A DNA stretch of 64,000 bases from Hyaloraphidium curvatum SAG 235-1 (GCA_025558095.1 JAIVFI010000002.1:992001-1056000), one strand, 5' to 3'. Counted from the stretch's first letter, positions 2,438-53,200 are shown. A program made the numbers and translations. The notes: generated from the letters alone by a model not told the origin.

Positions 2438-3733
2438 TCAGAGTCTGGTTTGCACGCTGGACTCGGCGACCACGGCCCAGAAGGCGTTGACAAAAGCAAG
2501 CACCTCCTCGCGCGTGCTCCAAAGCCCGACGCTGAATCGGAGGGCCGATTTGGCCAGGGCTGGCTCCACCTGCATCGCGGCAAGCACACCGCTCGCGGTG
2601 CCGTCCGAGTGGCACGCCGCGCCCTTGCCAACCACAAAGCCCGCCTGCACCAGCTTCGCGGCCAGGGTTCCGTTGTCGAGCGACGCGTTCCGCCCGGCCA
2701 CGGAAAACATGGAAACGTTCGAGGCCCGGCCCCACGGGTTCGACTTGCCGTGGAAGACGACGCGGAAGCCGGCGGGGGCTGACGCCGCAACCCGCTCCTC
2801 AAACAGGCCGATCAGCTGCGAGTTCTTGGCCTCGATCTCGGCCAATCGGACGGTGATCGCTTCCGCCGCCGCGCCGAGGCCGGCGCACTGCGGCACGTTC
2901 TCCGTGCCCGAGCGCCACCCTTTCTCCTGTCCACCGCCCAGGACCGTCGCAAAGAGCGGCACCTCGGCCTCGAACTCAGCCGCCGCCGAGTATCCCCTGT
3001 CCCAGCGCGCACCGAGCCCGCGCACGTACAGCGCCCCGATCCTCGGCGCGTAGAACTTGTGCCCCACGACCGTGAGCATGTCCACCCCCAGCTCCCGCGC
3101 GTCCACGCGCATCTTGCCGATCGCCTGCGCGGCGTCCGTGTGGACGATCGTGCGCTTCGGGAAGGATCGGCGGGCGGCCCTTTCCCAAGCGCGCACCCGG
3201 TCTGCGATGCCCCGGAGGTCGGCGACCGCCCCCGTCTCGTTGTTGACCAGCATGATGCTGACGAGGGCGGTCGTGGGGCGGAGGGCCGCGGCGATGTCGT
3301 CGGGGTGCGCGGCGCCGTGGCCGGGGCGCAGTCCGACCACGGTGAGGTCGATGAGGCCACGGAACTCCAACTCCTTTGCGGGGACCGCGATCGCGGGGTG
3401 TTCAATTGCCGAAATGACGACGTGCGGCTTCGGTGCGGCCAGATTGCCACGTCCGTAGCGGTGCTCGAAGAGCCGCACCGCGTTTTCCAGGACCAGGTTG
3501 TTCGCTTCCGTTCCTCCCGACAGGAAGACAACATCGTGGGCCGCCTCGGCGCCTACGGCGCGGGCAATTTGGCTCCGGGCCTTTTCCAGCAGCTCCTTGG
3601 ACCGCCGGCCGAAGGGATGGCCCGTGCTGGACGGGTTGCCCCAGCCCTCACGCATCGCGTCCGCCACGGCCATGGAAGCCTCTGACAGGTACGCTGTCGT
3701 CGCATTGTAGTCGAAGTAGCCCCGGTACTCCAT
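2438..3733 (-). CDS. SCLY: Selenocysteine lyase-like PLP enzyme (class V aminotransferase, NifS/SCLY group), intronless
   Basis: YFDYNATT, WGNPSS, SGGTEANN, HTDAAQAIGK, VGHKFYAPRIGALYVRG, GGGQE..RSGTEN, GAACHS. The GHKFY-PRIGALY and GAACHS segments match animal SCLY as I recall it, rather than Nfs1 (GSACTS). No mitochondrial presequence. Confidence 0.85.
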   Translation of the reverse strand: MEYRGYFDYNATTAYLSEASMAVADAMREGWGNPSSTGHPFGRRSKELLEKARSQIARAVGAEAAHDVVFLSGGTEANNLVLENAVRLFEHRYGRGNLAAPKPHVVISAIEHPAIAVPAKELEFRGLIDLTVVGLRPGHGAAHPDDIAAALRPTTALVSIMLVNNETGAVADLRGIADRVRAWERAARRSFPKRTIVHTDAAQAIGKMRVDARELGVDMLTVVGHKFYAPRIGALYVRGLGARWDRGYSAAAEFEAEVPLFATVLGGGQEKGWRSGTENVPQCAGLGAAAEAITVRLAEIEAKNSQLIGLFEERVAASAPAGFRVVFHGKSNPWGRASNVSMFSVAGRNASLDNGTLAAKLVQAGFVVGKGAACHSDGTASGVLAAMQVEPALAKSALRFSVGLWSTREEVLAFVNAFWAVVAESSVQTRL

Positions 3734-8578: not shown

Positions 8579-9785
8579 ATGCCGCGGGAACGCAGAGAGG
8601 ACCCCGCTGTCGCGTTCGAGTCGAAGCTGGATAGACCCGTGGTTAAGCCTCATTTCCACAAGAAGGACGTTCACCTTACCGAGTTCCAGAAGTGGAGGAG
8701 TGGGCTCTTCGTGGTCTTTGCTCGTCCGACCAGGGAGTTGACGCTGCTCCCCAGATAACTTCATTTCGGGAGCATTGGCTCTGTCGACATCATATGCTGT
8801 GATGCACCCTTTGGATACCCTGAAAACGAGGATGCAGGCGCAAGCAGGGACGGGCAAGGGCAGCGGCATCTCGTTCAGGGCCATGTTCACCCGGGAAACC
8901 ATGAGGATGCTCAGCAAGGGCTTCACAACGAGTATTCTGGGGGCAGCAGGCCAGGTAGGACCGTCGTTCGTCCCTTGCACTAGGGTACCACTGAAGCATT
9001 TGTTGCAGGGAGGCCTCCGCTTGTCGACCTACGAGTTTACGAAGGCTCACATGTTGCGATGGTCGGCGGCGCATTTTCCTTCGTCCACCTCTTCAGCAGG
9101 CCCTTCGCCTGCCATTTCGGCCATTGCCGCCATCTTTGGCGACCTGGCCTCATCCATCGTGAAGGTACCGCGAGAAATCATTACCACACGACTGCAAACG
9201 GACTATATGGGCGACGGCCGTGCTTCGGCGTCAAAAGTCTTCCGCGATATTCTGAAAGAGGACGGGCCGCTGGGACTTTTCCGTGGATTCTGGAGCACGA
9301 CGGCCAGAGATGCGCCGTTCATGGTGATCCTGTTTGTGGTCTATGAGAGCTTCAAAGGCTACAGTATTCGGAACAACATTGGCGTTACCGTTGCCCCCGG
9401 TAGCATCGGTGGGAGCCGAAACGGGAATGGGGATTACATTTCTTCGCTGGAGGCGGACGATTCTGCTGCTCCTGCGACGGGCATCACCACTTTCCGCTCC
9501 ATTCTCTACGGCGGCATCTCTGGCTTTTTGGCCGGTTACGTGACGACGCCCTTCGACGTTGTGAGGGCAAAAGTCATGACGTACAAGAAGAAGGACCCTC
9601 GCGCCCCTGCGCCAGGCATGACAACCGTGTTTCGCGAAGTTGCGGAGGCAGCACGCGCGCGTGGGGATTCTGTCACCCGGGTGTTCTTCACGGGAGCTCT
9701 GGCACGATCTTTCTGGTGGTACTGCGTCTGTTCCTCCTTTTTCGCCATCTATGAACGAATGCGCCAGGTTCTCCAGGTTGTGTAG
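8579..9785 (+). CDS. Mitochondrial carrier (SLC25), SAM-carrier-like
   Basis: Three PxD/ExxK/R signatures (PLDTLKTR, PREIITTR, PFDVVRAK) and ARDAPF. Introns 8700-8754 and 8955-9008. The start could also be ATG 8519. Confidence 0.85.
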
Positions 9786-9821: not shown

Positions 9822-12800
9822 CTAGTTGTTTTTCAGCGCCTCGAAGTCCGCCAGAAGCTCTTCCATAATCTGCCTTCGCGGGCGCAAGACATACGTCACC
9901 AGCTCAGCAGCCGTGAACGATGTCTGGGCCCCCCTCGCGCTCCTCTGCCGCTCCACCTCAACGCCCAATGGCTTGCTTCGCACCAAGTGAAGCATCTGCT
10001 GAAGCACCGCACCGAGTCCTTCCTCATTCAGTCCGCGATCGCGGATGAACTTCTCGACGTCGCCCAGAATGAGATTGGTGATCCGCTCCAAGAAGCCCCT
10101 CAGAGCAAGACCGGCTGAAATGTTCAGCGTCATTGACACTGCCGATAAAGGTCGAATGTTCCGTCCAACTTACATGCCTGGCTGTGGTCGTGATCGAGGT
10201 GGTCACCGGGGCGTCCAGTGAATGGATCCAACAGGTGTCCCGCGTGATCCCGCACGATCCTTGCGCGTAGATCGCGCCACTCCTGGCTTGCGTAGAGCGG
10301 CGTAGGATCCGATCGGTCTCCGTCGCCATACACCGTGCTCAGAACGCGCTCGTACTGAGTGCTGTAGTCCCGAAAGATGCTACGCCCGGTCCATGATTTT
10401 GACAGGTACCGGAAAATCAGCATTGCCAGCCTTGAAAACGGCTTAGCTGTTGATATTCAATTCGTGCGTCGCCCATACCTTCTGCCCGCATCGTTTGCAA
10501 GCGGGTCCAAAGTACCCGCTGCGATGAGCCAGTCGATGAACCCTAACACCTTGTTGCACGGCCCACACAAGAACGCTCGCAGGTTGAGGCAGTCTGCGCC
10601 AACGAAGTCTTCTGCAGTGTGAGCATGGTCCGTGTCGGCTCTGACCGACATGGCATCTCGCGTGTCTTTGAGGCCAGGTATGATGTCATTCTGAGCAGAG
10701 GGTGAGTACGCTTTCCCAGGCAGAGACTCCTGGACTGACTGCGTTGTGCTCTGCTACGGCCGACTTCCGTTTCCACTGGCCGACTTCCTCGAGGCACGCC
10801 TCACATCGCATTTTGTGGAACTCCAATTCCCACAGACCACTGTCCCGAAGTCGCTTGGTGTAGATCTGAACGAACAAACGTTTACTGCAAGTGCAGTGAT
10901 GCCTGAACCTCGGTCACTCACAGCGCAAAGGTCCGCGACAAATGGCAGGAAGGCGACGATGTCGTCCGTGATCCCGTCACCGCGGGCCGCCCGCAGGAGC
11001 TCACAGTGGTACGATGATGCCCAGTCCAGGAGCCGACCGTTGGTGGATACCAGTTTCCTAGCAAGATTGACCTTGCTGTGCCTTTCCCTGTTTGTCGGGT
11101 ATAGTCCTGTGTTGGGGCCGACCTTCTTCTTGGGCTTGCATGCCGAACAGAACCAGAACCCTTCGTCTCCTTGGCGTCGCGGCACGGCGTACTCCGCAAG
11201 CTGTGTCCCCGGAGGAAGAGGGCACGTCCCTGACTGGCACTCAATCTTCTTTGTGCTCAAGCACGTGGCCACGAAGTGAGCGCAGTCTCCGGAGTCATTA
11301 TCCCACTCTTTGACGAGATCCTTGGTCCCGAGTGAGCAAACGCAATCGGATTAGCGTCGCAAAGAGCATTTCACCTTGAAGTCATCGTCATTGGCTCGCT
11401 CGATGATGTCGGAGACCATGAAGAGGGGCGGATTGGCGATGCTGAGGATGTCGACGAAGGTCCCGGTGACTTTCTTCCTCAGCTTCTTTGCTAGCCGGAT
11501 CGTCGCCCGTTCGGTGTCGTAAGTTACTAGACGAGCGTTAGCCAGACAGTTACCGAGCTTATACCGTTGCTCACAGATCCACGACACGTTATCCCCGTAA
11601 TCGTTCTGGACCGATGGTGCGTTGGGATCAGGATCGACGACGGCTTGCTCTTGTGCGTCGGGGGCTCGTCCAGGTGCCAGGCGAATGAGGTTGCTGCAGT
11701 GACAAACCATGAGCATCCCGCAGAAAGAACTGCCCAACGGATCCGCACCGCAGTTCCCGGGAGTTCATGAAAAGATCGAAGACTCGCGCCACTTTCGTTG
11801 TTGAAGGTTTCCATGTCAGCTGACTGCCGTGCGCGGTCAGTCGCTGGGGGCCGATCGCCGTGTCCCTCGCAACAAAGGCCATCCCCAATACATTCTGCAA
11901 TACGGCGATCACGGTGGGCTGAAGGCCATCGAGGCGAATGGTGCCATTCAAGGGGCGCCCCTGGATCCGTTGGCGGAACCCGTCCAACCGATAGTATTGC
12001 TTCCCGCCATTCGAAGTAGGGAAGATTATGCCGAAATGGACACTCGCCGAGTCCGCCTTGAAGCTAAGGGCATGCATCCGCGCCGCGTCATTGCCGATCA
12101 TCTCCGTCGTGACGGAGACATCGCGTCCGAAAGCGCCAACGAAGGCTTTACCGGCGGCGACCCAAGCATCAGCCGCTCCGCGGGCGTATCCCGTCGACAA
12201 TTGCTGCCCCTCCTTCTTGTATCGATCCCACGGAATTACGACCCGCATGCTGTCTTTCTTGCAGTTTTGGCGTGCAAACCGGACGATCGCCTCGTCGTCC
12301 GCGAAGTACGGCTTGTCTACAGGTTTGAAAATGTAAGAACGTGCCGGGGGAGATGGCACCGAGAAGTCGTCGTACCGGTTCTGGCGGTGCGATCGACGTC
12401 GTTGACGGTACCTGCTCTGTGCTTCTCCTGGATGCCGCCCTGCGATTCGACGGCGCCACGTGAACTCCGGCTGGATCGACTTGCTGATGGACCAACCCCG
12501 AGTTCAGAACCCTGATCCTTGCCCGTGGTCCCATTGTCGACCGTCTCGTGGTCCTTGGTCTTGGCGTCGGGCTCCACATTGCTGCGGGTTCGTCGCCGGA
12601 TCAGAGAACTGAAATGGTGAGGTGAACTGTCCAACCCTTTCGGTCCGAATAGGAACCCATCAATCTGTGGCGGCACATCGATCAGTTTCGATCGATCGCG
12701 AATGCGAGCATGCGGCGCACCGTTGTCGTAGGCGTCGGCCTTTGGGTATGCCACTCCATCGTGAAACTTCCCTCAACGCTCTCGCCTTGAGTCAACTTGC

Positions 12801-15800
12801 GGCTGGGATGCTCGTTGTCAGCCGAAACGGGTGCCGTTCAAGCGCTCATGCTCACTAGATGGCGAACCGCGGAACGCACGTCGGCCCTTGGAACGCTCGT
12901 AGCCTCGGGTGTAGCTCGGCCAGCGTGAATGGGCCCAGGACCGTGTCATCCGACACGATCTCCCAGCGGTTCGCCCCGGCACGCGTTATGTACCCATAGT
13001 GTCCATGCTCCGAGACCCCGGTCTGGATGTGGCCGGAGTGCCAGAGCACCTTGTCCAGCACAAAGATCGATATGTCAATGGTCAGGTATTCCGTGAAGAT
13101 GATGCTGGGGTAGGTCTTTGTAATCGCGCCGTCAAGCTGACGGTATGCCCTGATGTCAAAGGCAAGAATATCGCCGATGCGCTGGATGTTCTGCACGAAG
13201 ACGTCAGAATCGCAACGCTTCGGCCTTCTTCTCCGGCGATGAGCACCTTCATGTTTGTAACTTCGGCACTGCATTGGACGCAATTGAATGAATGTGATAG
13301 GTTCCGCTCCAGGCAAGCGTTGAACGTTTCGGGAACGCCCTCCATAACGTCCAGCTCCAGATACGGTACCAGCTCGGAGGTGGCCCGCTCTTCATCCTGG
13401 GAGCGACAACCATCTGCGTGGCCGTGGGGCTCTGGAAGAAGTTCTACGGTGCAAAGGCCTTCGTAGAGGCCGGAAAGGTCGCCAAGGAGCGGCCGTACGA
13501 GCCGTTCCATCGCGTCGTCCTGCTCCAGCGTGCCGCTACCGATCATTGCCTGCGGAATGTTTAGCTGACTCCGCCTTTAGGCGGAGGAACTCACCCCGAG
13601 GGGTACGCCCTCTCGCTGGCACAAGTAACGGATGTCGTACGCCAAATCCCCGCCGGGTAGTTCCATCACCCGCCTGAGTAGTCGAACGTATCGCATTTCC
13701 TCTGACAATGCGTCCCAGTCCGTGGCGGAAAGGCGAACGTATATTGGCCCAACACCTGCGAGCAAGCCGAAGGACGAATTCCAAAAGCACGTGTTCGTGC
13801 CGTAGTTTTGGAACCTTGGGAATCGGAATCATGTGAGCCGAGCACATCGCAATGGCGAAGTGGAGCTGACCTGACGATCCCGGGCGCCTGTGGTTCTGGT
13901 AAGGCGAAGTCCAGAACTCTTGCAGTCCTCGGTCTCGTGTCGCGATCGTCGCCGTCTCTGTTCGACCAGGTGTCTCTGCTGACGACGAACCTGGCTTCAG
14001 CTGTGTTCGATCAAATGACAGGTGACCAACCTCGCGGTGCCTTCGGCAATGCGGGTGGATGAAGCCGGAGCCGGTGCTGCGGGACTGAAGCCCACGATTT
14101 CGGCGGCGCCTCTAGAGGTTGGCGTTCCAGGCGGGGGAACTTGCGGCGTTGTCGCCGCCAGAACTGGGAGCGACGGGGAGGGGAAGACCGCTGCATTGCC
14201 CGCGCGTATCCTGCCAGGCGGCGTCGCCTCTACGAAGATCGGTCGATGTTGCAGGACTGGAGCACGATCGCGCCCTGGTCAGCACGCCCGGATCGGAGAT
14301 CCGAACAGCAAACCAGCTCTCACGGTCGAATCTCCCAGAAGCCGAAAGCGCAGGGTCATGGGCGTGGGCACCATGTTGCATGCCTGCCTGCCGTCCGGGG
14401 TGTAGAGGTTGTGTGGTCGAAGAGCTTGTGGAGTCAGTATCATACCCGACGTCGACGTCCATTCGGGCGGGCCGGGGGGGTCGGGGGAGGACGAGATTAC
14501 AATTTGGGACCCGGCAGGCTTCCTTTTCGGACTTGTTTTGTCCTCTGCAGATTGACCGCACATGGTCAGCGGTTGTATCGAAGTTGGGCCGGGATGTGAC
14601 TGACCGGGATTGCTCTGCGGGACCTTGACGTACTCGCGGAGGGACACCTGTCCTCTCTTTGCCGGGGGCTCTGTAACCGAAGGCGTGAGAACGGCGCTGT
14701 AAGCATCAACGGCACTGCTTACCGATCTCCTCGTGCTCGTCATCCGATCCCAAGGTCAGATCGACGCATGGGAAGCCTGCGAAACGGAAGGTTAGTTCAC
14801 GTTGATCGCAAGGTTAGTTCACGTTGATCGCAAATGGGACGCGACTGATCTGACCCTGCTGGCTCATGTAGTTCTGCTCGGGGTTGACGTCAACTGGCAC
14901 TGGATCGGGGTTCTTGGCCGGGGACCGGTGAGCGCCCCGTCGGAACTTCCTGGGAAATTGGCCCACCCGGTTATGTTCCAGATCCGGTCCCGGCCTCCTC
15001 AAGAGTCGGCGCCTTTGTTGCTCGTCGCGGTGATCGTCTGCATGTTGGACGCATATGTGCGAACTGGCTCGGCTGTCGACGATCTCGTGACCTACCACCC
15101 GAATCGACATCCGCGAACTTCCCGCTTTCTGAGCTTCCCTTGAGCTTCCGAAGCCTCTTCTCTTTCAGAGCCCGCAGGCTCTTGCGCCGCTCCTCCTTGT
15201 CCTTGCGCTGCGCTCTCGTCCTCGTATTGTACCCATCTGGGTCGTCGGTCTCGGGTTCAGAGTCCGATTCCACCGTGACTACCAAACACAAAGCCGGTTA
15301 GCAGGAATTGTGAACGGATCGGACATGGAGCTGACCTTGGTTGCTCCCCCCGCCGCGGAGACGGAGCACACTCCGGCACGTCGAGGCGGCAGCAGCCACC
15401 GGATCCTCCTGTGATTCATCTGCAGATTGCATCGGCTGAATGGCTGTCGATGCACGGCGCCTCCGGCATTTGGCTTACCGCGGAAAACGTCGGCCTTCTC
15501 GGCCCCGAACTTCTCCCAAAGCTCCCGCCGGATCTGCCGGAGGGCCTTGTTGTGCTCCTTCCGTGCCTTGTTCTCGGCCGGCGTCTTGGCGGCGGCGGCG
15601 GCTGGCTCGTCTTGATCCGCGTTTCGAAACTGTCGAACCTGTTCGTCCCGGATTGTTGACGGCTGCCGCTTTTTGAGTTCCTGCTCCTTGAAGGTCTAGC
15701 GCACCTTGTCAGGCCGGCAACTGGGCAAAGGTCTGCATGCTTACCTGGAACGAGGCAATGACGTCTTGCGCACGCGGGATCTTGTGAAGATCCAGCAGTA

Positions 15801-16493
15801 TTCTCATGTCCTTCGGGTCCGTGATGCCGTGGATGTCGAGTCCGGGGTAGCAACGCCCGATGTAACGAACTGCGGCGTCGTAGGCGTATTGATCATCCGC
15901 GGCGAACGTGTTCTCGGTGAACACGGGTTTGAACGTCTTGCTGGCCCAGAAGGCGTAGCCGGCAGGCCGCCGGGCCCCCGTGTCGCGCACAGGCGGCGGA
16001 CGTTCTTGCACTCGAGCCCACGCATCTGCGAGGGGGCTGTGCTGGAAGGGGCGCGGCTTGCTGCTGCTCGACTTGTGCTTCCCATCCGCCATGATCCGCT
16101 CGTAGGACGCTGTGATGCGGGAGCCATTAAGTCCTGGGTATGGGTGCTCTGATGTATACGTACCAAGTCGAGCCATCAGATCCTTCGATCTTTCAAACGA
16201 CCTTCCGAGTTTGGCGAGATGCGACGGGTCGTCGTCGTCGTCGTCGTCGTCGTCGTTGCATCGATTCTGATGAAAGGGTGAGATCGACCCGATGCTCGCG
16301 GCTGCATACTCACGGCGGTGGGGATGCGCGCGGATGCGTGATTCGAGAGGCGCTGCCGGTCCTGGACATCGTACCGCTCGGCGAGCTCGCTGAAGTACTC
16401 CGAGATCGATGTGGGGCGAGAGGCCGACGCGTTGTCGACGCGGGGACTGCTGCTTTCGGCCCTCGACCACTCGTGGGGGTAGATTGACGCCAT
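9822..16493 (-). CDS. Large multi-exon protein: USP (peptidase C19) domain + half-PHD-like Zn finger + two tandem endonuclease VII-like domains
   Basis: Hand-spliced. Frame-consistent GT-AG introns include 16267-16313, 14777-14854, 14671-14722, 13550-13594, 12317-12375, 11694-11748, 11321-11374, 10866-10921, 10691-10739, 10431-10478 and 10115-10173; junctions between ~13830 and ~15480 are less certain. USP motifs: NYGTNTCFWNS, QDDAMERL, HSG..GHY, WEIVSDDTV. EndoVII motifs: CEAC..DHAH..RAFLCGPCNKVLG and DPFTG..LDHDH..RGFLERITNLILG. Confidence 0.72.
14788..14831. repeat. Perfect 22-bp tandem duplication (AAGGTTAGTTCACGTTGATCGC x2) inside a predicted intron
   Basis: Read directly: copies at 14788-14809 and 14810-14831. 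Each copy carries a minus-strand branch point ACTAAC. Confidence 0.9.
16228..16254. repeat. (GTC)9 microsatellite encoding poly-Asp on the minus strand
   Basis: Visible directly; in frame as NDDDDDDDDDP in exon 2 of the USP-EndoVII gene. Confidence 0.85.
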
Positions 16494-18318
16494 CTAGCGG
16501 CGATCGAGAATGTTGGAGGTCAGATCTGCTGCTTGCGAGCGAGCTCGCTGGCCTACCGTGCCGGGCGCAGCGCGGTGTGACGCGAACCCGTGGGGGCGGT
16601 CCGGGAGCTCCTGCGCGCCCTGTGGCGCACCCGCGCGGCCTCGAATTCAACTCGCGCGCGCTGGGAAGCCCACTGCGAGGGGCTACGCGGTCTGGTGCTG
16701 CTCCAGTCCCCCGCAGGAATTGCGGGCCGGTGGCCGTCCGTTACGTCGCCGTGGCCGGCACCGAAGGCGAAAAAACGCCTGCGAGCCGCGCCACGCGTTC
16801 GCAAGCCTTTTTGAGCGGGCAAGGAGCACGCGTTCGGGCGCTCGCCTGCCGGTTTTGCAGGGCAGGGTGGATCGCACCCGATCGCCCATCACTGCTCCAT
16901 CACTGCGTCCTCTCGCCCCTGCATACCCGTGCGCGAGGCACCTCAACCCCTTTAGAAGGGCCGGTCTCCCTTTGCTGCCGGCCAGAGGCCTATCTCGGCT
17001 CCGGGTGACCTGCGCTGGTGACGTTGGTGCGACGCGGTGCTGGCCGCGTCGCACGACGCTCGCCCGTCGGAAACGCCCGGCAGGATCGGCGACCGATCGG
17101 CTGCGTCACATGCACGCGGAGTGCTACCGCTGCCGCTGCTTCTGGGCGGGCGCGAGATGTCCGTCCCGTGCACAGTCATCCCTGGCTGATTGCGCGGGGG
17201 CGGGCACTCGCGGCAGTCTGTGGAACGCATCCCGCTCGAGTGCCGGGATTCAGAGCGGGCGGCATATGGCAGTACCTTCGCGGCTCCTGCTTGGCCGGTG
17301 CCGGCGTTTTTCGTTCGACTGGAGTCGAACTAATGGACCGGTCGTTATCGCGCTTGGACGGTTCGCCATCCCGGCCGCTCGGGGGCGCGCGGCTCTCGGC
17401 CGGGGCTCGTGTGCATTGGAACGAGGTCTCTGTGTGTCGATTCTGACGCTCCAATGAGCGGTTTCCCCGCGGAATGTTAGCCCTCTCGCTCGTTGTTTGT
17501 TGCGGGATGTTTCACCTTCTTTCTCGACCGCGTTGAACCTTGTTCCCAAATCTGCGAGCTTCACGGGAGCTATCACCCTCGGGCTCTGCAATATCAAACG
17601 CGGAGGGATTTGGCTTAGGACGGCAGCAACGATGCCGAGGAAGGCTCTGCAGTGGACCGGGGCAAGTCCGTCGGGGTCGTCTGGCTCTGAAGGATAGATT
17701 GGACGGTACAATACCTTGGGCACCTCTTTGCAAAGCAGAGAATGTTACGGACGTCGTTGAGTTCTGCCGCGTGCTTTCAAAGTGGCGGTGTGCGAGCTTG
17801 ATCCTCGCGAGAACCGGAACCTCCGCGAGGGCATCGAGAGCAGACAAGGAGGGCCTTCGGCTATCAGATCGCACTGGAGTGCCTGGGCTTTTATCTGTCG
17901 ACGTTCTGAATCGGATGGTGCCTGTCGTTGGATGCCAGCTCCACTCGTCCGCGAATGCGCTTCCATGTTTTCTTTTCCCCCGTCATTTCCTGCGCAATCG
18001 ACATACAGCAGGACGCACTCCATCGGCGGCGCCACGTAGTCCGTGTGGGGACGTGCTTCATTACTCGCGATGGATGTGCAGCGAGACAGGGGATCGCGGG
18101 AGGCGATTAGGTCGCAATGGGCACGCGCGTGGGTGCAATCCCGCAAAATAAATAGAGGTACAGGTATTCAAGTGTTGCGGTGGGCTGCGAGAGAGCCGTG
18201 TCGCTCGTTGGTTGTCAAACGTCGGCGGAGATTTGGGAAACAACCTGGCGCTCGGCGGTGCAGAAATCGAGATCGAGATCGAGAGGCTGCCTCCAAACAA
18301 CTCGCCCCGTCCTTCGCA

Positions 18319-19943
18319 ATGGCACCGCCTTCTCGTGCGCCGTGCAAGTTCTATGCCCGAGGCACCTGCCGGGATGGCAACGCGTGCCGTTTCCCGCACG
18401 TCGCCGCGCCAGCCCCCGCCCCCGCGTTTCCGCTGGTGTCGAAGGATCCGCGGCGGGCTGCTCAGCAGGCCTGCGCTTTCTTTGCTCGCGGACGATGCAA
18501 GTACGGCACCCAGTGCCGTTTCCGGCACGTCCCGACGGGCCTCTTTGCCCGGGAGACAGAATCCGGACCCGTTGGCGGAGTGGCGGCCGGGGGCGCGTCG
18601 TCGTCAAAAGTTGCCCGGGGATCTACGCGTGACGAACAGCGGTGGGTATGTCTAGTTGCGCTCTGGTTGCTGCGGACGTCTCACGCGTCTGTCTGATCAG
18701 CGCGTCCGAGGAACTGGACCGCCTCCGCCGCCAGGTCGAGAGCCTCGAGATCGAGAACGCGGAGCTCCGCACGCGGCAATCACTGGAAACTCCTGTGATG
18801 CCTTTGAATGCGGCCTCCAGGATCGGGTGGACCTGCGTGCTTCCTATCGAGCTCGTGCTCAAGATCGGGGAGTGGCTCCCCGCCGGCTCCAAAACCTTGG
18901 CGACCTTCATGCTGTCGTGCAGGGCGATGTACGGACTTCTGCTGCGGCACCATCGTAATGTCGTGTGCACGGAATCTCTCGCTACGCGCGCCCGCTTGGA
19001 TCAGCGTATCCACCAGCTAGCGTCAGCCGGAACTCTGGAGAAGGTCAAGGAGCTCCGCATGAGCCGGAAGGGGACCGAGGATTCGGTCCCGGAGGAGTTC
19101 GATCCCGAGCAATGGCCGGATGCCGATGTGGCTTTCCGCCTGATGGCCGAAAGCTGCCCGAACCTCGAGCGCCTGCAGTGCTCGCTGCAGTTGGGCTACA
19201 TGCCCGCGTTATTTGCCACGCTCCAGCTTGGAAAGCTCGCGCTGCTGGACCTGGCCTTCACAGACTCGCGCTTTTCGGGAGGCACTGAGCCGGCACCCTT
19301 GCCACTGACGTCGTTGCGGACGCTGATACTCCGCTCGCCGTCTCCTAGGATCGAAGCGGCGCTGTTTTTCCAGCGCTCATGCCCTTCGCTTGAGCGCGTT
19401 GAGTATTACTTGTTGAGCAGGTCCGACGGCGAGCACTTCGATGCACTCAGCTTCCGCCGGGGGCTGTCCTACGACTTCAAGGAAAAGATCAAGGTCTGGG
19501 AGTCACGGACGTCCGCTGACCTCGCTATCATGCTCCGCAGCATCGCCTTCGCCCCCGAGGTGATCAAGCTGTTGGATCACCGTGCGCTTCCTCTGTCCGT
19601 GTGGCGGTCCCTATGTCAGCGGCAGACCCTGCGGGAGTTCTACCTGAAGGACTTCCTTTCCGATCTGCTGAAATGCCGGCCTCCGAATCTGCGGGTCTTC
19701 GAGGTCGAAACCGTGGGCGTTTCCGGCGGCCTGGAGGCCGAAAGTCTCCGCGACATCGGGACCTGGTTGGAGGGGTTGGAACGCTTTTGCGTTCGGGGGC
19801 TACCCGAACTACTGTCTGATAAGCTCACGTTTTGGTACTTGGAAGGCGGGGACTTTGGCGTCAAAGTGAATCCCGAGGCCCGCGGTTACTCACGGCGGGT
19901 GAAAAACGAGCTTCAGTTCTGGAGAGCCCGACTCTCGCTTTGA
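18319..19943 (+). CDS. Tandem CCCH zinc finger + coiled coil + F-box-like/LRR-like protein
   Basis: Two C-x7-C-x5-C-x3-H fingers (CKFYARGTCRDGNACRFPH; CAFFARGRCKYGTQCRFRH); intron 18642-18700; F-box-like LPIELVLKIGEWL..LATFMLSCR; LRR-like CPNLERL and CPSLERV. Confidence 0.8.
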
Positions 19944-20457
19944 TGAGTGCGCCGAACGTCATGTGGAGGGGACAGGCGCTGGAACCGGATGCCGGTAACC
20001 TGCAGCTCTTCCGACTGTTGTTTCGATAGAGTGCGTGGCGAGGGCTTGAACGCTCCGTACTGCAAAACCTGCTGCCGCAGTGCCTTCGTGTCCTCGGCAT
20101 AAAGAAGCAACGTTGAGTATTGTCATTCGCGCCTGGCTGGGATTAGCAAGACGCCTCAAGCGAGGCTGATCGATACGAGGAAACACTGGCCATGGTTCCA
20201 TCTCATCGTTTCCACCAAGCAAGCAATAGAGTAGTACATTCCAACTTCCAGCTTTGGAAAGACAAGACTCGGACAAAGCTTTTGGTTTCCGAAAGGGTGT
20301 AGGAGAACGAAGTTCGAGGCTCTGGTGATAAACAAGCCGGCCTGCGCCCCAGCAACAGCACCCGCGCAAACCTGCGCGCAAACCAGCCTCGCGCGGCGCT
20401 CGATCCACCCCAGACTGCGGAGCCGAGGCTACCTTCTGCCTCTGTCGCCCCTCGGCG

Positions 20458-23400
20458 ATGTCCGCCGCCTCTCCCACCCCAATACAGTTGCCGGAGGAGC
20501 GGATAGGAGACCTGGAGGCAGAGGTCGCCCGTCTCAAAAAGCAACTCGCTCGGACACTTGTGATGCTGGAGGAAGCCCGTGCCGCGATGAAGGCAAACAA
20601 CGACCGCGCGGCAGAGCTAGTGGAAAAGGCAAAGCGGTGGGAGGACCTGGCGAAGGAAGCATCCCGCGGCCCGCGTGCAAGCAAGTCCCGTACCGTGAAA
20701 AGGCTGGACACGGAGATCGCCCGCCTTCAGGGCCGATTGCGGGTCTACGGGGTTCTGGAGAAGGACACCGGCCGTCTTGTCCAACAGCTGAATTCGGAGA
20801 ACAGACAGTATCGGCAGATGCTCGGGCTGCCGCAGATCGACGAGCCGTAAAGCAAAGCGAACCACCTGACTTCTATAGTACATTCGGACGTACAGTATTC
20901 GCCAGTTTCCACCCGAGCCCGGCTGCCTCATCGTGGTCGTCGTCCTCGTCGTCATCGTCCTCGACACCGGCTGCTGCCTGCGCACAGGGACGCTTTGTCA
21001 TCATCAAAGACCGCGTGCAGATCCTGGACGACACGGTGGTGACGGCCAACGCAGTGACCCCGAGGTTTCGGTGTACGGCAGCAACCCGGCCCAGTTCCTC
21101 GAGGAGCTGCCCGAGTTCTTCCCGGATGCGCACGAGCAATTTGTCAAGGAGTACTTTGAGCAGTTCTGCGTGCGGTGAAGCGTCGGGTGCTGGGGTTCTC
21201 GAGTGTTTCGGGCCACGCGGAGCGCGCCGGTCAATTTGGGGAGCTGTCGGCTACTCGTCGGACGTCTAAGTCGAGGTCAGGACGTCACATCGTTCCGCAA
21301 AACCCGCCCGAATTTAACCTTCGGTGCAGATTTGAAGGCAATCACCCCTCCCGGAGTGATACGAAGTTGCAATGCTGCAGTGGGTGGACTCCGCACGCCC
21401 CCAGAGAAGGCTTTGGTCAAACTCGTGGAACGCGCGGCCTCGCAACACGTGCTCGGCCAGGAGCTGGCGGAGCAGACCAAGGTGATCACGCGGGGGTCGG
21501 CGTTTGGAGCCGGGGATCTGGCGGGCTTGACAGAGACGGCGCAGAACGGCGAAACGCGTGAGTCGGAGCGGGAGTCGGGATCGGCTCGGACTCGGGGTTC
21601 GGACGACCAAGGCGGGCTCGAAGGGGTGGCCGGGGGGGGGGGGGGGGTTCCGGGGCCAGGACTAGGCTGGTTTCACCACAGGAACGGGAGGATCGCATTC
21701 TCGGTGTGCGACAACATGGCGACACATATCCACAATGGGGAGTTCCAAGTAGACCCCAAGACTTTCTTCAGGGGGGATTTGCCGAACTGGGCCAAGGTGC
21801 CCAAAAGCGGAGAACACTTTTACTTCACGAAGCTTAACGGTGATGTGAGTGGCGAGGGAGCTTGATCACGCACAAATTCCTGACGGTTGTGTTGCCCTGC
21901 AGTCCATATACGGGGGCAAGCATGTCGATGCCAGCCACAAGAAGATGGGCCCCCACAAGGAAGCTATGGAGGAGTTCGTCATCAGCCTCCTAGGCAAGCT
22001 CGTGAATGGCAAACGTCAGGGCGGTTGGTTGGATGAGGTGAAGATGTCGCCGATTGGCGGTGGTGCCGGGGGAGCATCTTATGGGTCAGCCACCATCGGC
22101 GGGGTGGACAAGCGGGGAGGTCACGAGGGCGGCAAGCTCGGGCCTCCAGCCTGGTTCCGCAGCCTAAGGCAGAAAAAGGAGATCGAGGCGGCGCGGCACA
22201 TCCTACATGGGATCAACAAGCTGATGATGGATCTCGCCGAAGACGACACCCTCGGGTACTCCAAGAAGGCACTCGCCGAGATGTTTGCCTCGCAGAAGCG
22301 GTATGGAAGCGTCATGGCGTGCGAAGGTTCGATGTGAGTCGTCCGAGCGGCAAGCTATTGCGAGAGTTGTCGGCTGATGCGCGATACCCCACCAGTTATA
22401 CATCCTTTCAACTAAACCTTGTCAACTTCTCAGTTGCAAATGACCCGGAAAAGTTCTACCACAAGAAGAGTGAAGGGCTTGAACTCCACACCGATCCGGG
22501 CAACGACTACTCCGACATTTCGGCCAAGTTGGAGCTCACCCTTATGCCCAGGGGGTTCTGCGAAGCCCGACTTTACCTTCCCGAGACCGGGATTTGCTAC
22601 CCCGGGACTCAGTTCTCATACTCGCTCTTCCGGGGCCTTGCTACCCACTTCGTTGCACCGCCCTTCCTCGTGGACCCTGCGGCCTTCAAGCAGCAGAACA
22701 CCGACGGTCCTGAGCTTCGGGAACCCAACACCGAGGATGCTTTTGGCGAGATCGGGCCTTACTGTAGGCTTTCCATAATCGCGTACCGTCATGGAAGCCC
22801 CCTTCGACAGCATAAACCCTGGTACTTCCTGGAAGTTCCGTACATGGCAAAGTGAGTAGGAACTTCGGCTCCATCATTGCATGCCTGCGCAAATTGCTTA
22901 CATGCTGCCACGACAGGCTGGGGGCCAAGGTATTTAGGAACGACGCCAAGGGTGCCGATCCGTACACGCAGCTTCTCAACGACGCTGCCCTGCGAGAACT
23001 GATCGAGCTCATGAACGGCCAGCCGGCTTCAATCGTGAAGCGAAAAGAACTGGCCTACAAGCTCGAGAAGGGCAAGATCATTCCCAAAGGCACCTCGAAG
23101 TTCCTCGTCGGCCAATCGTGCTTCAACAGCCTCCCAGCAATCGGTACCGGCTCCCACTCGGCAACCGGACTCTTGAACTGGGGTGGCAAACGGTGCGCGC
23201 TAACGCTGCGCACTGTGCGCATGAAGATGGGGTACGCCAAGGCAGCCGAGCCAAAGTACGCCACTCGGCTTATCTTACACCCCGAGCACATGGACATCAC
23301 GAAAATGACTGACAAGGAGCTCGACAAGGAGCTCGAGCGGGCAGGAGTGTGGGATGCGTATGTCACAGATGCAAGAAAAGAGCAGGTGGAGCGCACAAAG

Positions 23401-25064
23401 GCAAAGGCAGCCCGCAACAGCAGCAAGCAGAATGGTGCCCAAGCAGCCAAGAACGTTGGCAACGCAAACGGCGAGAAGCAGGATTCAGGCGACAACGAGG
23501 TCATCGAATACGATCATCATCTGGTCGCATCGTTCTCGCGTGACATCGACCGCCTCAAGGACCTGGCAACAGATGAACAGGATGCCAACGGCAACATCAT
23601 CAGAAAGAAATGGGAGCACCCTTTGACACCGGGTGGGTCTTATGGCCCGCGTCGGAGGTGATCTCGCTGACACAGAGGAGGCGATGGACGAGAAGAACCA
23701 CGAGGTGCACGCTGAGGAAGTTCGCAAGTTTCTTGGAGACAAGCCTTCCACCGATGCAATGTTGCAAAACGGCGTCAACATGGTCAACGCCGCCCGCGCC
23801 TCCAAGGGCCTCAAGCCTCAGACGGCTTCGCAGATCTGGGGTAAAGGGGAAGATACGGATGATGACTCCGAGGAAGACAACACTGCGCCCAACAAAAGCG
23901 GTGCTGCTTCGAGGAAGAAGAGGAAAGGGAAAGGGGGGAAGGGGAAAGGGAAGGGGAAGCAAGGCAATGCTTCCGATGATGATGCTCGGGATGCGTCAGA
24001 TATCGACAGCGACTATGATGTCAAGCTCGACACGTAAGGCCGTTATTGCCGAAGAATGCAGACACCTAAGTGCCCAATTTCTGCAGATCTCACCCGTGCA
24101 ATAAGGGCCTGATCCGCATGCTGCGCAGCTTGGACTCCAACGCCGATCACACGAAGTGCCGCTGCGAAACACAATTTGGGAAGCAGAAGGGCGCCAGGGT
24201 GTCTGACAAGAAGCTCAAGAACCTGAGCTCTTCCGCTATCAGCACACTGTACCCCGTGCCGCCCGACGAGGCCCAATCCAGCAACAACGACGCGATCTCC
24301 AAGGCCCTCAGCAACCTGCCTGCCGATGCACATGCCCGGAGGGATGCAGTGCGAGCGCGCCTGGAAGGCGCCGCGGTGGTGGCAGAGCACGCTCGGAACG
24401 CAAACGAAATCAGCGACCAGCATGACGATGCTCTGGGGTTCGTGCGTGGGGTCAACAATGCTTGCCGGCAGTCGATCCAAGCGGTGCAGATGTGCAGGCT
24501 TGCTCTCGACGCAACCGGACGGAGCTCCTGGTCCTCGTTCATGCGTAAAGGTCACTCTGCAACAGAAAAGGAGATTGAGGTGGAGGATTGGGTGATCAGC
24601 TGGCTGATCGCAGAAGGCTATCTGCCCGAAACTACACAAAGTGAGTGAAGCGACAGGTCTCCTCGCGCAAGATCTAGACGGTATTCGTCTTGGCAGCTGG
24701 TTGGAGCAGGCGGAGCTCGTTCCGCAAGAAGGTGAACGGGATGCTGCGGTTCCACGCACTCGCAATCGGATACGGGTACCGGATCCACCTCCTCCTGGAC
24801 AAGCATATCTTCTACACGAACCTGGAGTATATCTCGGACGAGTTCTTCGAGCAGTGGTGCAACCTTGCAATGGCAAAGCTGGAGAACGTAAGCAATGTCA
24901 AGGCGCACGAGCAGGTCAAGGAACTGCACCACCGGGTTCAGGTCAGGCTCGCTTCCATTTCGAAAAAGCTGGAGGCCAAGTGGGCGGGTGAAATGTCGCA
25001 GCGCTTTACAAATCTCTTCAGCAAGGGGCCCTATTCTAATGTACCAATTTTGGAGAGGAGTTGA
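20458..25064 (+). CDS. Multi-exon TET/JBP-type 2OG-Fe(II) dioxygenase with basic/acidic C-terminal region (5' structure uncertain)
   Basis: Core exon gives YTSFQLN...LHTDPGND (His 22487)...FRGLATH (His 22646)...RLSIIAYRH (Arg 22766). Canonical donors near 21558, 21845, 22334, 22852, 24034 and 24641 link the exons in frame. It is unresolved whether the coiled-coil ORF 20458-20850 is exon 1, and there is a frame break near 21050. Confidence 0.7.
21632..21647 (+). repeat. G16 homopolymer within a G-rich predicted intron
   Basis: Read directly; flanked by GGGG runs; lies in putative intron 21558-21665. Confidence 0.8.
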
Positions 25065-25213: not shown

Positions 25214-26570
25214 TCAAAGCTTCGCGCTTCCCATTCTCTCCCAATCAACGACGATTTGGTTGTCCTGGCGCTTCACGCGGATCGACGCGACGGCGTTCCT
25301 CACAGCCTGCCAAGTAGCTGGGGCGCCATCACCGAGCGAAGCTATGAACTCCTCGACTGTTCCTCGTCCTGTTGCGCTCAATTGATCGAAGCAATCGACA
25401 ACTCTTTTAATCATGAAAAGAGCGTACGGGTAAACTCGCCGGTTGCCTTTGAAAGGCTTCTTGGGGTCCTCGGGGTTCGTGAGCCGGAAGTCGACACCGC
25501 CGATGGTCCTTTTCAGCGGCTTGCGCCGGTCCGATTCCGGCATGGCGGCAACGCTCTCGCGGACGATCCGCACGACGTCGAGAATGTGTGGCAGAAAGTC
25601 GGCGAAGATGAGGCGGAACAGGAAAAGGATCGACTCTGCGATCCGATCGTCCTCCTTGGGGATAGGGGCATACTGGAACTTGAGCTTCTGCCCGGACTTG
25701 CTCGTTGCGGGATCCGCTCCAATGATACGCCCGGGCTCCGACCTCGCCGGCACCATCCCCGAAGCCCTTTCAATCCAGTCGGCAACCGGCTGCGCCTTCA
25801 TCTTGATCATCGTCGAGGGCCACGGGTCCCGATATAGGTGAGCATAGAAGGGCCCCATCAGAGAGAAGTCGCCGAGCGATGGGACGTTGCCGAGGAGGTA
25901 CGGTGAGCCGGTGAAGTGTTTAGCGAGGGGCTCGAGAATGCAACGTTCGAAGTGAGCCTCGCACGCCTTGTCGCCGAGCGACGAGATGCCTTGGCCAAAC
26001 AGGGACGCGGCCGAGAACTGATCGCCCATCTTGGATCCGATATCGAGGTACTTTTGCACTTGTCCCGGGCCGGGGAAAGCCCCCATGAGTGCCATCCTCC
26101 CAAACTCGAAGTATATGTGGCTCCGCTCATCGCGCCGGGACCAGCGATAGTGCATGGCCCAAATTACTAGCCATTCATCCGACCATGCTTCGAGGAGGTA
26201 GTTGGCCCACGCCTTCAGCGGTTGCTGTTCGGGATCCGGTAGCAGGCGAGGTTCAGGGTGCGTCCGCTCCAGGTAATCGATGATGTCGCTTGTATCCTGA
26301 ATGACGGTCGTGTCGTCTGGGCATATGAGCACGGGAATGAACTGAACGCCCGTCCTGGGGCCGATTATGGTCTGGCGAACGGCGGGGGTCGCCTCGACTT
26401 CGACGAACGGGATCTTCTTCGCCCGTAGGTACGCGCGAGCCTTCGACGTGAAATAGGAGTTCTCAGTTCCCAGAAGCTGACGTGCAACAGGGATCGGAGT
26501 CAGGGCGCTCCAGTCGAAGGGGACAAGTTCGACCTCAACACACCTTGTACTTCCCGTCTCCGTAGGGCAT
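25214..26570 (-). CDS. Glutathione S-transferase-like protein (SYFT-type N-domain, long C-domain)
   Basis: MPYGDGKYK|LLGTENSYFTSKARAYL via intron 26477-26543; FIPVL..QDTSDIIDYLE; PYLLG..PSLGDFSLMGPFYAHLYRDP; ends in -AKL (PTS1-like). Confidence 0.85.
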
Positions 26571-26829
26571 CGTGGAACCGTCAGAGGGCTCTTTATGCCT
26601 GAGGCGCGAAGCTTAGTCCGACCGCCGTGTACCGGACGGTTGGAAGCCGGAACGAGAGTGAATCGATTTTGTCCCCCAACTTGCCGCCCGGCCGCCCGCC
26701 CGGGCCCGCCCCGCGCCCTTTCGATCTCCATCACCGAGCAAGCCGGCCCCGTTCCCGAACGGAATCGCGTTCTTCGCGAGGAGGATGTCTTCAAAATCTC
26801 ACGCAGCACCGCCTAGTACGAACGCGGCG

Positions 26830-50240: not shown

Positions 50241-53200
50241 ATGACGCTTGGACTCGGCAGAAGGTGGGCGACACGATGCTCTCCATTCCTTGCGTCTGTT
50301 TACACTCGTACGCCGCCCATGGCTGCTTTCGTCCCTCAGCAGAATCTCCCCGGTCGTGCCGACCGATGAGGATGAGGAGAGCGTACCTTCGACGCCGACC
50401 GAGTCCCGCGGACGGTCGACAATGCGCGACTCTGCTCCCGAGAACGTGGAGCCAGGCTCGGCGGACTCGCTGCCCCTGCCGACCGTGCCCGAGGAAACTC
50501 TTCCTGCGTCGGACCCTGAGGCCGTTTCTAGTTTCCCTCCCGACCTCGGTCGAGCCCCATCTTCGTCTTCCCAAGTGCACCGCCGCCGGCCGCGTCGAAT
50601 CACGTCCTCCTCAACGACGGACGCCGACCGCGCGGCCACGCACCGTCTTTCGGTGTACGAAATGGGCAGCAGCGTCGTCGACGATACTCTTTTGCGGACG
50701 GGCATCGCCGCAAACATAGCCACGGGACTCAACCTGAACACTTCCGTGCCGGTGGTACCGATGCCAACAATCCGGCCGACGCGCACTGGTTCGTCGAGCT
50801 CCCTCGGCTCTCTGTCGGGGCGAAGGCAGCACTCAATGTCACCAGTTCGGGAAACGGAACGCGAGAGGGAGGCGGAGCGCGCCAGGGCCCGGGAAAAGGA
50901 GAAGCAGGGTTTCTTTGCCCGCATCATGGAGAAGACCTTCTACCGGACCAACAACACCGTGACGTCTCGATCCTCGGCCGGCTTCCCTGCTGCCGCACAA
51001 GGATTGAGCTACGGAACGTCCAGCAAGCAGAGTGCCGAGGTGCGCGAGGCCCTGGACAAGATTAAGAACCTGCCGGACGAAGATGTCGACGGGGAGCTGG
51101 AGAAGCACATGGTGAGCTGCTGTCTCTTTGACGCCAGGGTTCCTCTGAGATCCGAGCAACGAATCAGGACATGTGGAACATCCCCGAGCCCAGAAGGGAC
51201 GACATGCGCCGGCTCAAGCCAGAGGCAAAGAGGCAAATGCTCGAGATTGCGGCGGAGCAGGCTGCAAAGTCGCCGTTGGAGCGTGCTCCCGGCTACTTTC
51301 TCGACGGCCTCCGCGCAAACAAGCTGGACATACGCCTCGTCCAGGATCTAACGATTACGATGCGCACAAAGTCGGTCGAGTGGGTTGCTTCATTTCTCAA
51401 GGCAAACGGACTCGTCATTTTGGCGGAGAACCTCAACTACATCTTGCACGCGGCGCACGAAGAGCGGATTGATCACCGGACCTACGGTTTTCTGGAGGAA
51501 TCCTACGTCCGTTGCCTCAAGGGCCTAATGAACACGAGGGTGAGTTGCTGCGTGTTTGTCGTTAGCGGCGTTCGGCTCTGAACCCTTTCCACTAGCCCGG
51601 CCTGGCTGCAGCGTTCGACTACATCCCCCTGTACCCGACCATGGCCCTCGTTCTTTACTCCAAACGGACCAGCGGCACCCGCACTCATTGCATGGTCCTC
51701 GATCTCCTCGCGGCGATCGCAACCTTCCCTGGCGGCCTGGGCGTGGTCGTCGAGGCTATGCGTGCGGCATATCTTGCCGACCAGGAGCGCGAAATGGGGT
51801 TCGAGTGCTCTTCGGAGGACGACAGGCGTCGGTTCCAGGAACGGTACCGCCGCTTTGCCGACGGCATCGACAGCGCAGAGAGCGAGCAGAACCGCTTCCG
51901 GATCGTCACCAAGCTTCTCCGGCACAGCGTGCGGGAGATGCTCCTGCCGAATGGCGCTTTCGGCCGGGACGGATCCGCGAATAGCCGCTTCGCTCACGTC
52001 CGGGACCTCCAGACTTCTTGCCTCGGCTTCGTCAACTCGATCCTGGTCGGTTCGGAGCAGGCGAGGGAGAACATGGAGTACCGCATGCACCTGCGCGGAG
52101 ATTTTCTGCAGTTGGGCCTGGAAAGCATCATCGAAGCCATGATCCAGTGCGCTTCCGGCACGGGCGAAGCGCTCGCGGACACAGTCATCGGACAGATCGA
52201 CATGTTCATGCGCAACTTGGAGCAGGACGAAGCCGAGGTCTGGCGCAGGCTCAAGGTCCCCGAGGACGATGTGGCCGGCATCGACGACTCGGCGGGCGAA
52301 TCCGATGCCGAATCGGTCGCTAAAGAGGAGGAGGCTGTGCCGACTGGGAATGTTCCGCCGCCGCCTCCGCCGCCTCCCATCCCTGCCAGCTTGCAAACTG
52401 GTGCTTCCTTTCCTCCTCCCCCCCCTCCTCCGCCGCCGATCCCGCCGAGTTTGCAGCTTTTTGCCGGCGGAGCTCCGCCGCCGCCGCCTCCACCACCTCC
52501 ACCGCCTCTTCCTCCGTCGGTTCTGGCAGCAGCAGCCGGGGCGGCTTCGGCAAACGCAGGCAGCGAAACGAGCCCAATCAGCACAGTCTCGTCGGATGGC
52601 GACGACAGCGCGGTCCTGACCGCGGTCGCCACCGAGACGCCAGCTCTGGGCCCGAACGCGCTGACGATCCAGGTCTCGCGATCGGAAGGCTCCATTTCGC
52701 TGGTCTCCTCGGAGTCTGACTCGATTCCTCCGGCGAGCGCAACGAGGCGGGGCCATCTGGCTCTGCTGAACCCGGACGAGGTTTGGGAGGTCGTCCGCGC
52801 CGCGCTGCAGGACACCCCGGCATGGCGGCCGTTTGTGGACGTGCTCCGGCATGGCCTGCTTATGAGAGGCACCACCGCACTGCGAGCTCGGCAATGGAGA
52901 CTCGTGGACGTCTTTCTGCAGCATCTCATTTTCAGCGACGTTGTGGATCGGGAGGGCGGGAAGCCACCTTCGCCTGTCGGTCCCGGGGACCTGCCCAACA
53001 GCCCCCTCGTGATCAAGGGCGACGACTTGATCGCGGCGATCGACCGTATGGAGGCCGCAGAAAGTGCTGCTGGCGGCGAGGAGCGGGTGACCAAGCTCGC
53101 GGACAGGTGCCGAAAAGCCGAGCGCGATCGGGACGCTGCGGAGGCGCTGGCAGGACAGAAGGAGGCGGAGGTGACCAACTTAACGCTCGAGATGGAGCGC

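Follow-up and report, generated by a model that had tools for sequence, protein, structure and literature searches.

Candidate TET-like, USP-like and EndoVII-type motifs in a three-gene chromosomal block of Hyaloraphidium curvatum that is absent from the orthologous site of a relative

In the TET dioxygenases CcTet and human TET2 (hTET2), the metal is bound by an H-x-D pair and a distal histidine 50 residues further on, accompanied by a conserved arginine, and in hTET2 the base is contacted by N1387 (HxD+3), Y1902 and H1904 (PMC11040006). Genes for such enzymes are known cargo of fungal DNA transposons of the Kyakuja/Dileera/Zisupton (KDZ), Plavaka, EnSpm, hAT and Helitron groups (PMC12730594). 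In a 2017 census the endonuclease VII (EndoVII) family numbered 330 members in viruses, 289 in bacteria and 0 in eukaryotes (PMC5714182), and loss of its zinc-binding cysteines is known within the EndoVII-type fold (PMC3113570). Here we analyse a 64-kb stretch, hereafter the window, of a nuclear chromosome of Hyaloraphidium curvatum (Monoblepharomycota; assembly GCA_025558095.1, contig JAIVFI010000002.1 of 1.3 Mb), in which a block of three intron-rich genes, A on the minus strand and B and C on the plus strand, carries motifs reminiscent of these families together with others that resemble ubiquitin-specific peptidases (USPs). H. curvatum has the whole block, a relative lacks it at the orthologous site, and we give an even chance to the reading that an ordinary chromosome here holds a lineage-specific segment of three genes, with no recognisable transposon, provirus or restriction-modification-like cassette (coordinates are collected in Table 1).

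Comparison with the relative shows the block to be discrete. A 4.2-kb Logan contig (L003) from SRA run SRR23967301 (P0006), reached via a 65%-identical glutathione S-transferase (GST) fragment, carries by tblastx the ERG24, GST and mitochondrial carrier genes in the order and orientations of the window at 57-78% protein identity; about 130 bp separate its GST stop codon from the end of carrier homology, and nothing in it matches window positions 9822-25064. An earlier note on this DNA had called for a synteny comparison at exactly this junction, and the flanks are indeed adjacent in the relative, with 15.2 kb missing between them. The bounds that it gave also proved accurate, running from the carrier stop codon to that of the GST gene: the stop of the minus-strand block gene (9822-9824) lies 36 bp from the former, and the stop of the plus-strand gene (25062-25064) lies 149 bp from the latter. 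The breakpoints fall in the short spacer between two convergent genes, and an exhaustive search of the proteins of the collection that holds L003 found no homologue of the gene C exon that we discuss below as a candidate double-stranded beta-helix (DSBH). Most likely the block was either gained by rearrangement in this lineage or lost from the relative, the two being deeply diverged (65-76% protein identity in the flanking genes); long-resident genes that the relative shed or relocated would fit, as would a segment that was translocated inside the genome. The GST locus of Gonapodya (L002), considered as an outgroup, was rejected as not syntenic. On L003 itself, the carrier frame has no stop codon at the orthologous position and continues at 3270-3560 through the spacer into GST antisense sequence, for which an error in sequencing, an intron at the 3' end or a genuine extension could account.

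The layout described in the earlier note, two long, intron-rich genes pointing apart with another gene between them, is confirmed by our gene models, which were built with a simple, heuristic splice-aware dynamic programme: genes A and C diverge, and the plus-strand gene B sits between them. Introns in the block are 45-65 nt long; their donors read GTRAGT, their branch sites CTRAY and their acceptors YAG, and the deposited protein DFJ74DRAFT_187419 (P0001), encoded at 21716-23661, matches three of the modelled gene C introns exactly. Within the region, introns are densest in gene A, at about one per 93 residues when its annotated span is set against the length of its product. Public annotation of the block seems to be broken up, gene C being split among three deposited models (223, 586 and 423 residues, the second being P0001), with a mere 23 nt between the stop codon of P0001 and the ATG of the next. 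An annotated 315-residue gene at 16510-17457 on the plus strand is an Arg/Ala/Gly-rich open reading frame (ORF) in a spacer of 63% GC, has no Pfam match and looks spurious, and the interval of 16.5-18.3 kb is otherwise without a convincing gene.

P0001 and the gene A exons used as queries are orphans in every collection that we searched. Spliced genes were searched as single exons, the deposited P0001 being the sole multi-exon query. In an exhaustive phmmer comparison with 1.84 billion cluster representatives, the DSBH-like exon matched nothing but its own protein, P0001, apart from two artefactual repeat proteins (P0002 and P0003). Neither the exon ORF nor P0001 gained a further relative by word-indexed search, and scans in which P0001 and four exons of gene A were compared with IMG/VR, JGI metagenomes and phages in GenBank (by tblastn for the phages) came back empty. 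P0001 lies on a single contig, has no paralogue and is thus single copy. Because the lineage is phylogenetically isolated (the best named eukaryotic match of the neighbouring GST, from Gonapodya, reaches only 51% identity), fast-evolving genes without relatives are less of a surprise here than they would be in a clade with dense sampling. As neither P0001 nor the searched gene A exons have a homologue, there is also no second locus at which co-occurrence of the two genes could be compared.

The earlier note had raised the possibility that the block is a domesticated relic of a giant element or virus, and had pointed to the KDZ/Plavaka-type transposons with which fungal TET genes are often linked. 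A Pfam scan of all 105 stop-free ORFs of at least 85 residues on both strands of the block found no transposase, integrase, reverse transcriptase, helicase, polymerase or capsid family; apart from noise from coiled coils or low-complexity sequence, it returned CCCH fingers and EndoVII alone. At neither end of the block did inverted or direct terminal repeats exceed shuffled expectation, and no repeat family was found within the window. Codon bias and introns are of host type throughout the block, including introns inside both EndoVII modules of gene A, and this, together with the lack of mobility genes and repeats, speaks against a foreign segment inserted recently. Cargo that a large mobile element or an integrating virus brought in between carrier and GST, since domesticated or decayed with loss of mobility genes and termini, would explain why presence and absence alternate, insertion-like, exactly at the spacer of about 130 bp. 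It would also suit orphan genes with phage-associated domain types, EndoVII having been without eukaryotic members in the census cited above (PMC5714182), and the carriage of TET genes by fungal transposons (PMC12730594). We nevertheless regard such an origin as improbable, since an element of this kind would have to be reconciled with the region's highest intron density and host-type splice signals, with a left side that leaves at most 36 bp for a terminus, with single-copy P0001, with the absence of relatives in IMG/VR or among phages, and with the lack of both inverted repeats at the termini (TIRs) and duplications of the target site (TSDs). A KDZ/Plavaka-type transposon in particular was rejected, as its defining features (transposase, termini and extra copies) were looked for and are missing, and the suggestion of a mobile or viral relic finds no support in these searches.

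Base composition points the same way as regards cargo, given that third-position GC content (GC3) is the same in the block as in its host neighbours: 0.72 in gene C and 0.70-0.76 in gene A, compared with 0.67 in the carrier, 0.73 in GST and 0.71 in ERG24. The weaker GC3 bias that had been ascribed to the two long genes relative to their neighbours therefore does not hold, and a compositional island was rejected; it is the more distant genes of the window that have higher values (0.74-0.86).

The best-supported enzymatic motifs of the block lie in the C-terminal part of gene A. Module 1 keeps all four zinc cysteines (CEAC and CGPCN) as well as the catalytic DHAH and asparagine of EndoVII; searched by itself, its core exon reaches 23.2 bits with PF02945 (cut-off 23.6; E 6.7e-5; profile positions 38-66 of 82) and has matches in three endonuclease VII families of PHROGs (E 0.007-0.075). 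On these grounds module 1 very probably adopts an EndoVII-type fold. Module 2 retains a DHDH..RG..N..LG core, which by eye stands closer than that of module 1 to the family consensus, and has His/Glu/Thr in place of the zinc cysteines; an intron splits the module, and its halves, each searched alone, had no profile match. Of the tandem EndoVII arrangement claimed previously, the two motif cores are present, and the profile score of module 1 stops just short of the Pfam cut-off. The deposited gene A model (1022 residues, start at 13546) likewise carries a faint Endonuclease_7 (PF02945) record.

Upstream of these modules, gene A contains motifs of the USP type, namely a Cys box, a QD.AxE motif, a CxxC (NCVQCS, 13268-13285, after EQDDAMERL) and a His box, in canonical USP order over about 260 residues. 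A regular expression for the Cys box has its sole match here in all six frames of the window. No UCH/USP profile matched the Cys-box, middle or His-box exons, which were searched singly although the domain spans at least three of them. The deubiquitinase motifs reported in the earlier note are thus present, while profile support for them is lacking, Pfam, NCBIfam, PHROGs and PDB searches having come back blank. We consider a USP fold in gene A probable, somewhat less so than the EndoVII-type fold of module 1. A separate phmmer comparison gave the His box an insignificant match to WW domains (2jxw, E 0.8), and its stretch G-H-Y-G-Y...W-E resembles the WW consensus, which is a caution for the USP reading.

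How far gene A extends is less firmly modelled: the whole gene possibly reaches 16493, with 12-21 exons and about 1100-1700 residues. The unannotated Cys-box exon (13595-13814) joins the rest in frame via a canonical 45-nt intron and has no in-frame ATG, so gene A must extend upstream of it. Part of the possible 5' region, 15165-16493, is annotated as a separate 373-residue gene, which is the alternative to its use as gene A 5' exons. Two repeats were noted in this region, a perfect 22-bp tandem duplication (2.1 copies, 14788-14833) in the uncertain 5' part and a (GTC) run of about 10 copies (16228-16256) whose minus-strand reading is a stretch of nine aspartates, within what may be the first exons of the gene.

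Gene B offers the only domain call in the block that passes a curated profile threshold. Its CCCH fingers (18343-18399 and 18472-18528) score 40.5 bits for zf-CCCH against a Pfam threshold of 20.5, with Torus, also above threshold, at 44.7 bits, and after them come one intron, a motif resembling an F-box (18834-18941) and a tail rich in leucine. Pfam therefore bears out the CCCH half of the CCCH/F-box-like gene that had been placed in the middle of the block, whereas the F-box-like match stays weak, at 13.3 bits against a cut-off of 24.3.

In gene C, the HxD..H..R-x-S-x-x-x-Y signature pointed out in the earlier note is present in one exon as H218-T-D220-P-G-N223, H271 and R311-L-S-I-I-A-Y317-R-H319 (P0001 numbering). 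Two details recall TET enzymes: the HxD motif and distal histidine are 53 residues apart, compared with 50 in CcTet (H326/D328/H376), and N223, Y317 and H319 are in register with the hTET2 base contacts N1387, Y1902 and H1904. The other residues of the hTET2 register are H1382/D1384, H1881 and R1896/S1898. By our own reading of the sequence, the exon also contains eight hydrophobic beta-like segments, ordered as a DSBH needs. Profile support for TET/JBP is absent: neither the exons nor P0001 had a Pfam match to TET/JBP (PF12851) or to a 2-oxoglutarate (2OG) oxygenase up to E 10, and comparison of gene C with PDB (phmmer), PHROGs and NCBIfam gave no match. AlphaFold2 run without an alignment returned P0001 and the core at pLDDT 35 and 34, respectively, and no usable fold. 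Taking both sides together, we see roughly balanced chances that gene C encodes a very divergent TET/JBP-like nucleic-acid base dioxygenase. In the modelled third exon of the same gene, a G16 homopolymer (21632-21647) is read as a glycine run; the site may be prone to assembly error or belong to an intron that was not recognised.

Several points weigh against our reading of the block and of its genes. With two taxa, insertion and deletion fit alike and cannot be told apart, and an origin that is foreign or lies in a conflict system also suits a discrete block of three orphan genes with nucleic-acid and ubiquitin motifs that a relative lacks. Neither the TET nor the USP call is backed by a profile, a PDB match or a predicted fold, so that profile searches, which the earlier note had named as a means of rejecting its domain calls, lend support to neither. 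For gene A, the deposited 1022-residue product holds most of the putative USP region and yet has no UCH match on record, and both boxes deviate from the PROSITE patterns by insertion (one residue in the Cys box, four in the His box). For gene C, the distal histidine lies 40 residues from the arginine, compared with 9-15 in CcTet and hTET2, although the hydrophilic stretch H271-R311 could be a loop insertion, and a loose pattern that omits the serine (H.D..[NDG]..H..R.....[YF].[HR]) occurs a second time at 25274-25543 on the plus strand, in a non-coding frame antisense to GST.

The last two points speak for an alternative in which gene C is no dioxygenase at all, its H-x-D..H..R-x-S residues being a chance constellation in a fast-evolving orphan and the block being made up of three unrelated lineage-specific genes. 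Consistent with this are the lack of any match to 2OG-oxygenase profiles or structures, the failure of AlphaFold2 to find a fold, the absence of a homologue that could show residue conservation, and the frequency of the loose pattern, of which 0.08-0.11 occurrences are expected per shuffled 64-kb window (0.11 for the signature as given in the earlier note). The strict pattern drawn from the published TET contacts, with N at HxD+3, Y at R+6 and H at R+8, is expected only 0.01 times per triplet-shuffled 64-kb window, a rarity that is suggestive for one window and not decisive for a genome-wide scan; it also sits in a verified coding exon, and the beta-like segments that we read there would put HxD, H and R on strands II, VII and VIII of a DSBH. 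We accordingly rate the chance constellation as rather unlikely.

If the motif calls are taken at face value, the proposed workings of the parts are as follows. Gene A would be a large nuclear-type protein that combines a papain-like USP-type signature, a zinc-finger stretch and two EndoVII-type modules; the tandem modules would mimic the EndoVII homodimer in one chain and cut branched or distorted DNA, and the USP part would strip ubiquitin from chromatin, or bind it there, at the sites so cut. Gene B encodes a protein with CCCH fingers and a putative F-box-like adaptor motif, and the central exon of gene C would bring together an iron triad, the Arg-x-Ser that binds 2-oxoglutarate, and the base contacts N, Y and H in the human TET2 register. 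All enzymatic functions of the block proteins are ones that we infer from their sequences.

From such parts the earlier note had derived a base-modifier-plus-nuclease module. Spelled out by us, it would be one in which the TET-like enzyme oxidises 5-methylcytosine or thymine and the tandem EndoVII recognises or spares the modified DNA, serving genome defence, selfish addiction or drive, or programmed rearrangement, with the USP and F-box parts as links to ubiquitin control. The three genes do form one discrete block, present or absent as a unit, all of them have motifs typical of nucleic-acid and ubiquitin conflict systems, and the hTET2 base-contact residues are kept in register. We nonetheless think the module quite improbable. 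Genes A and C stand about 4 kb apart with gene B between them and hence share no promoter, no homologous gene pair was found elsewhere for a comparison of linkage, no DNA-methyltransferase or modification reader was identified among the 105 block ORFs, and the TET and USP calls are calls on motifs. Its boldest form would be, in an early-diverging fungus, a self-contained and presence/absence-polymorphic cassette in which a very divergent TET-like base oxidase and a deubiquitinase-tethered tandem EndoVII make up a eukaryotic modification-dependent DNA cutter, with an F-box/CCCH adaptor between them; we hold this to be highly improbable. Were it true, the cassette might act in defence, drive or programmed DNA processing, and we know of no described counterpart to its architecture.

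Table 1. Positions of the block, its genes and motifs, and the flanking genes, counted from the first nucleotide of the window
Feature	Positions	Strand	Basis and remarks
Lineage-specific block, 15.2 kb	9822-25064		Between carrier and GST stop codons; absent at orthologous junction in L003
Gene A, firm part, about 12 exons	9822-13814	-	Heuristic splice model; coding from 9825
EndoVII-type module 2	9825-10378	-	DHAGH..DHLDHDHSQA 10175-10249, intron, GLALRGFLERITNLILG 10062-10112; read from sequence
EndoVII-type His-Me module 1	10481-10865	-	CEAC 10794-10805, 49-nt intron, DTDHAH...LRAFLCGPCNKVLGF 10538-10636
Cys/His-rich stretch, presumed zinc finger (gene A)	11078-11284	-	Read from sequence; no profile match
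Largest gene A exon, 225 residues	11751-12425	-	No domain by Pfam, PHROGs or NCBIfam; no metagenome or viral relatives
USP-like His box FVLDKVLWHSG..GHYGYITRAGANRWEIVSDDTV	12939-13064	-	Read from sequence
USP-like QQDAxEF-type motif EQDDAMERL	13499-13525	-	About 75 residues past Cys box; read from sequence
USP-like Cys box FQNYGTNTCFWNSSFGLL	13760-13813	-	Read from sequence; NYGTNTCFWNS at 13775-13807
Possible gene A 5' exons	14031-16493	-	No domain by Pfam
Gene B, two exons	18319-19943	+	Model of about 521 residues; deposited model 313 residues
Gene C, about 9 exons, model of about 1330 residues	20458-25064	+	N-terminal coiled coil; acidic/basic low-complexity tail
Candidate DSBH dioxygenase core exon (gene C)	22396-22851	+	HTDPGN 22487-22504, THFVAPP 22643-22663, RLSIIAYRH 22766-22792
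Left flank, mitochondrial carrier gene	8742-9785	+	Pfam Mito_carr E 3e-38; conserved in L003, 62-76% amino acid identity
Right flank, GST gene (P0004, DFJ74DRAFT_186083)	25214-26571	-	Pfam GST_N; conserved in L003

The surroundings of the block are ordinary chromosome. By Pfam, its left neighbours are a thioredoxin-PUL protein and the mitochondrial carrier, and its right neighbours are GST, ERG4/ERG24 (a spliced gene), a second carrier and an NmrA protein, with a WD40 protein, a PP2C and a formin farther off in the window. GC content is 57-63% over 8-31 kb, housekeeping neighbours included, compared with 63-75% in the remaining window, and tRNA and Rfam scans of the window gave no match. The GST protein (P0004) finds its best matches, after Gonapodya (51%) and the SRR23967301 relative (65%), in bacterial GSTs at 33-38% identity, with hardly any further eukaryotes among the best 120 matches, and it may be an old bacterial acquisition in this fungal lineage. 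The formin is a single ORF (51641-55090, plus strand) with FH3 and FH2 by Pfam and a proline-rich FH1 repeat array of 36-39-nt period at 53397-53650.

We regard the block as a lead for experiment rather than as a discovery, its enzymatic assignments being motif-based. Should the motif calls hold, gene C would be the first candidate TET/JBP-like enzyme in Monoblepharomycota, and gene A would encode, in a eukaryote and across introns, a tandem EndoVII-type nuclease joined to a USP-like peptidase, and we know of no described case of this architecture. The relative, without the block at this site, offers a natural comparison.

Set beside the TET/JBP enzymes (human TET2, Naegleria NgTet1, Coprinopsis CcTet and Chlamydomonas CMD1), gene C shares H-x-D-x-x-N, the distal histidine and R-x-S-x-x-x-Y-x-H, but differs in having no detectable similarity to them by sequence or profile, no Cys-rich or CXXC region, and a candidate core that is embedded in a coiled-coil protein of about 1300 residues. 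The TET-carrying fungal transposons resemble the block in that a TET-like gene stands in a lineage-specific segment beside other genes; in contrast to them, the block has no transposase, TIRs or TSDs, its TET-like gene is single copy and has no sequence-level match to the PU, AG or PE types, and its host belongs to Monoblepharomycota, whereas the known elements are those of Basidiomycota and Pezizomycetes. With the ubiquitin-specific peptidases (MEROPS C19, Pfam UCH), gene A shares the Cys box, QD.AxE, the finger CxxC and a His box of the form H-x-G...GHY...W...DD.V, although its core is shorter than in known USPs, its boxes contain insertions, it has no profile match and it is fused to nucleases. 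T4 endonuclease VII and Hpy99I (PF02945) offer the closest parallel to those nucleases: module 1 shares CxxC..D-H-x-H..CxxCN..LG with them, and module 2 approaches the consensus DHDH..G...RG.L....N..LG. Unlike the family as described, gene A is eukaryotic, intron-split and fused to a USP-like region, with a second module devoid of zinc cysteines, and where the known enzymes are small homodimers, it would carry its two EndoVII-type modules in tandem in a single chain.

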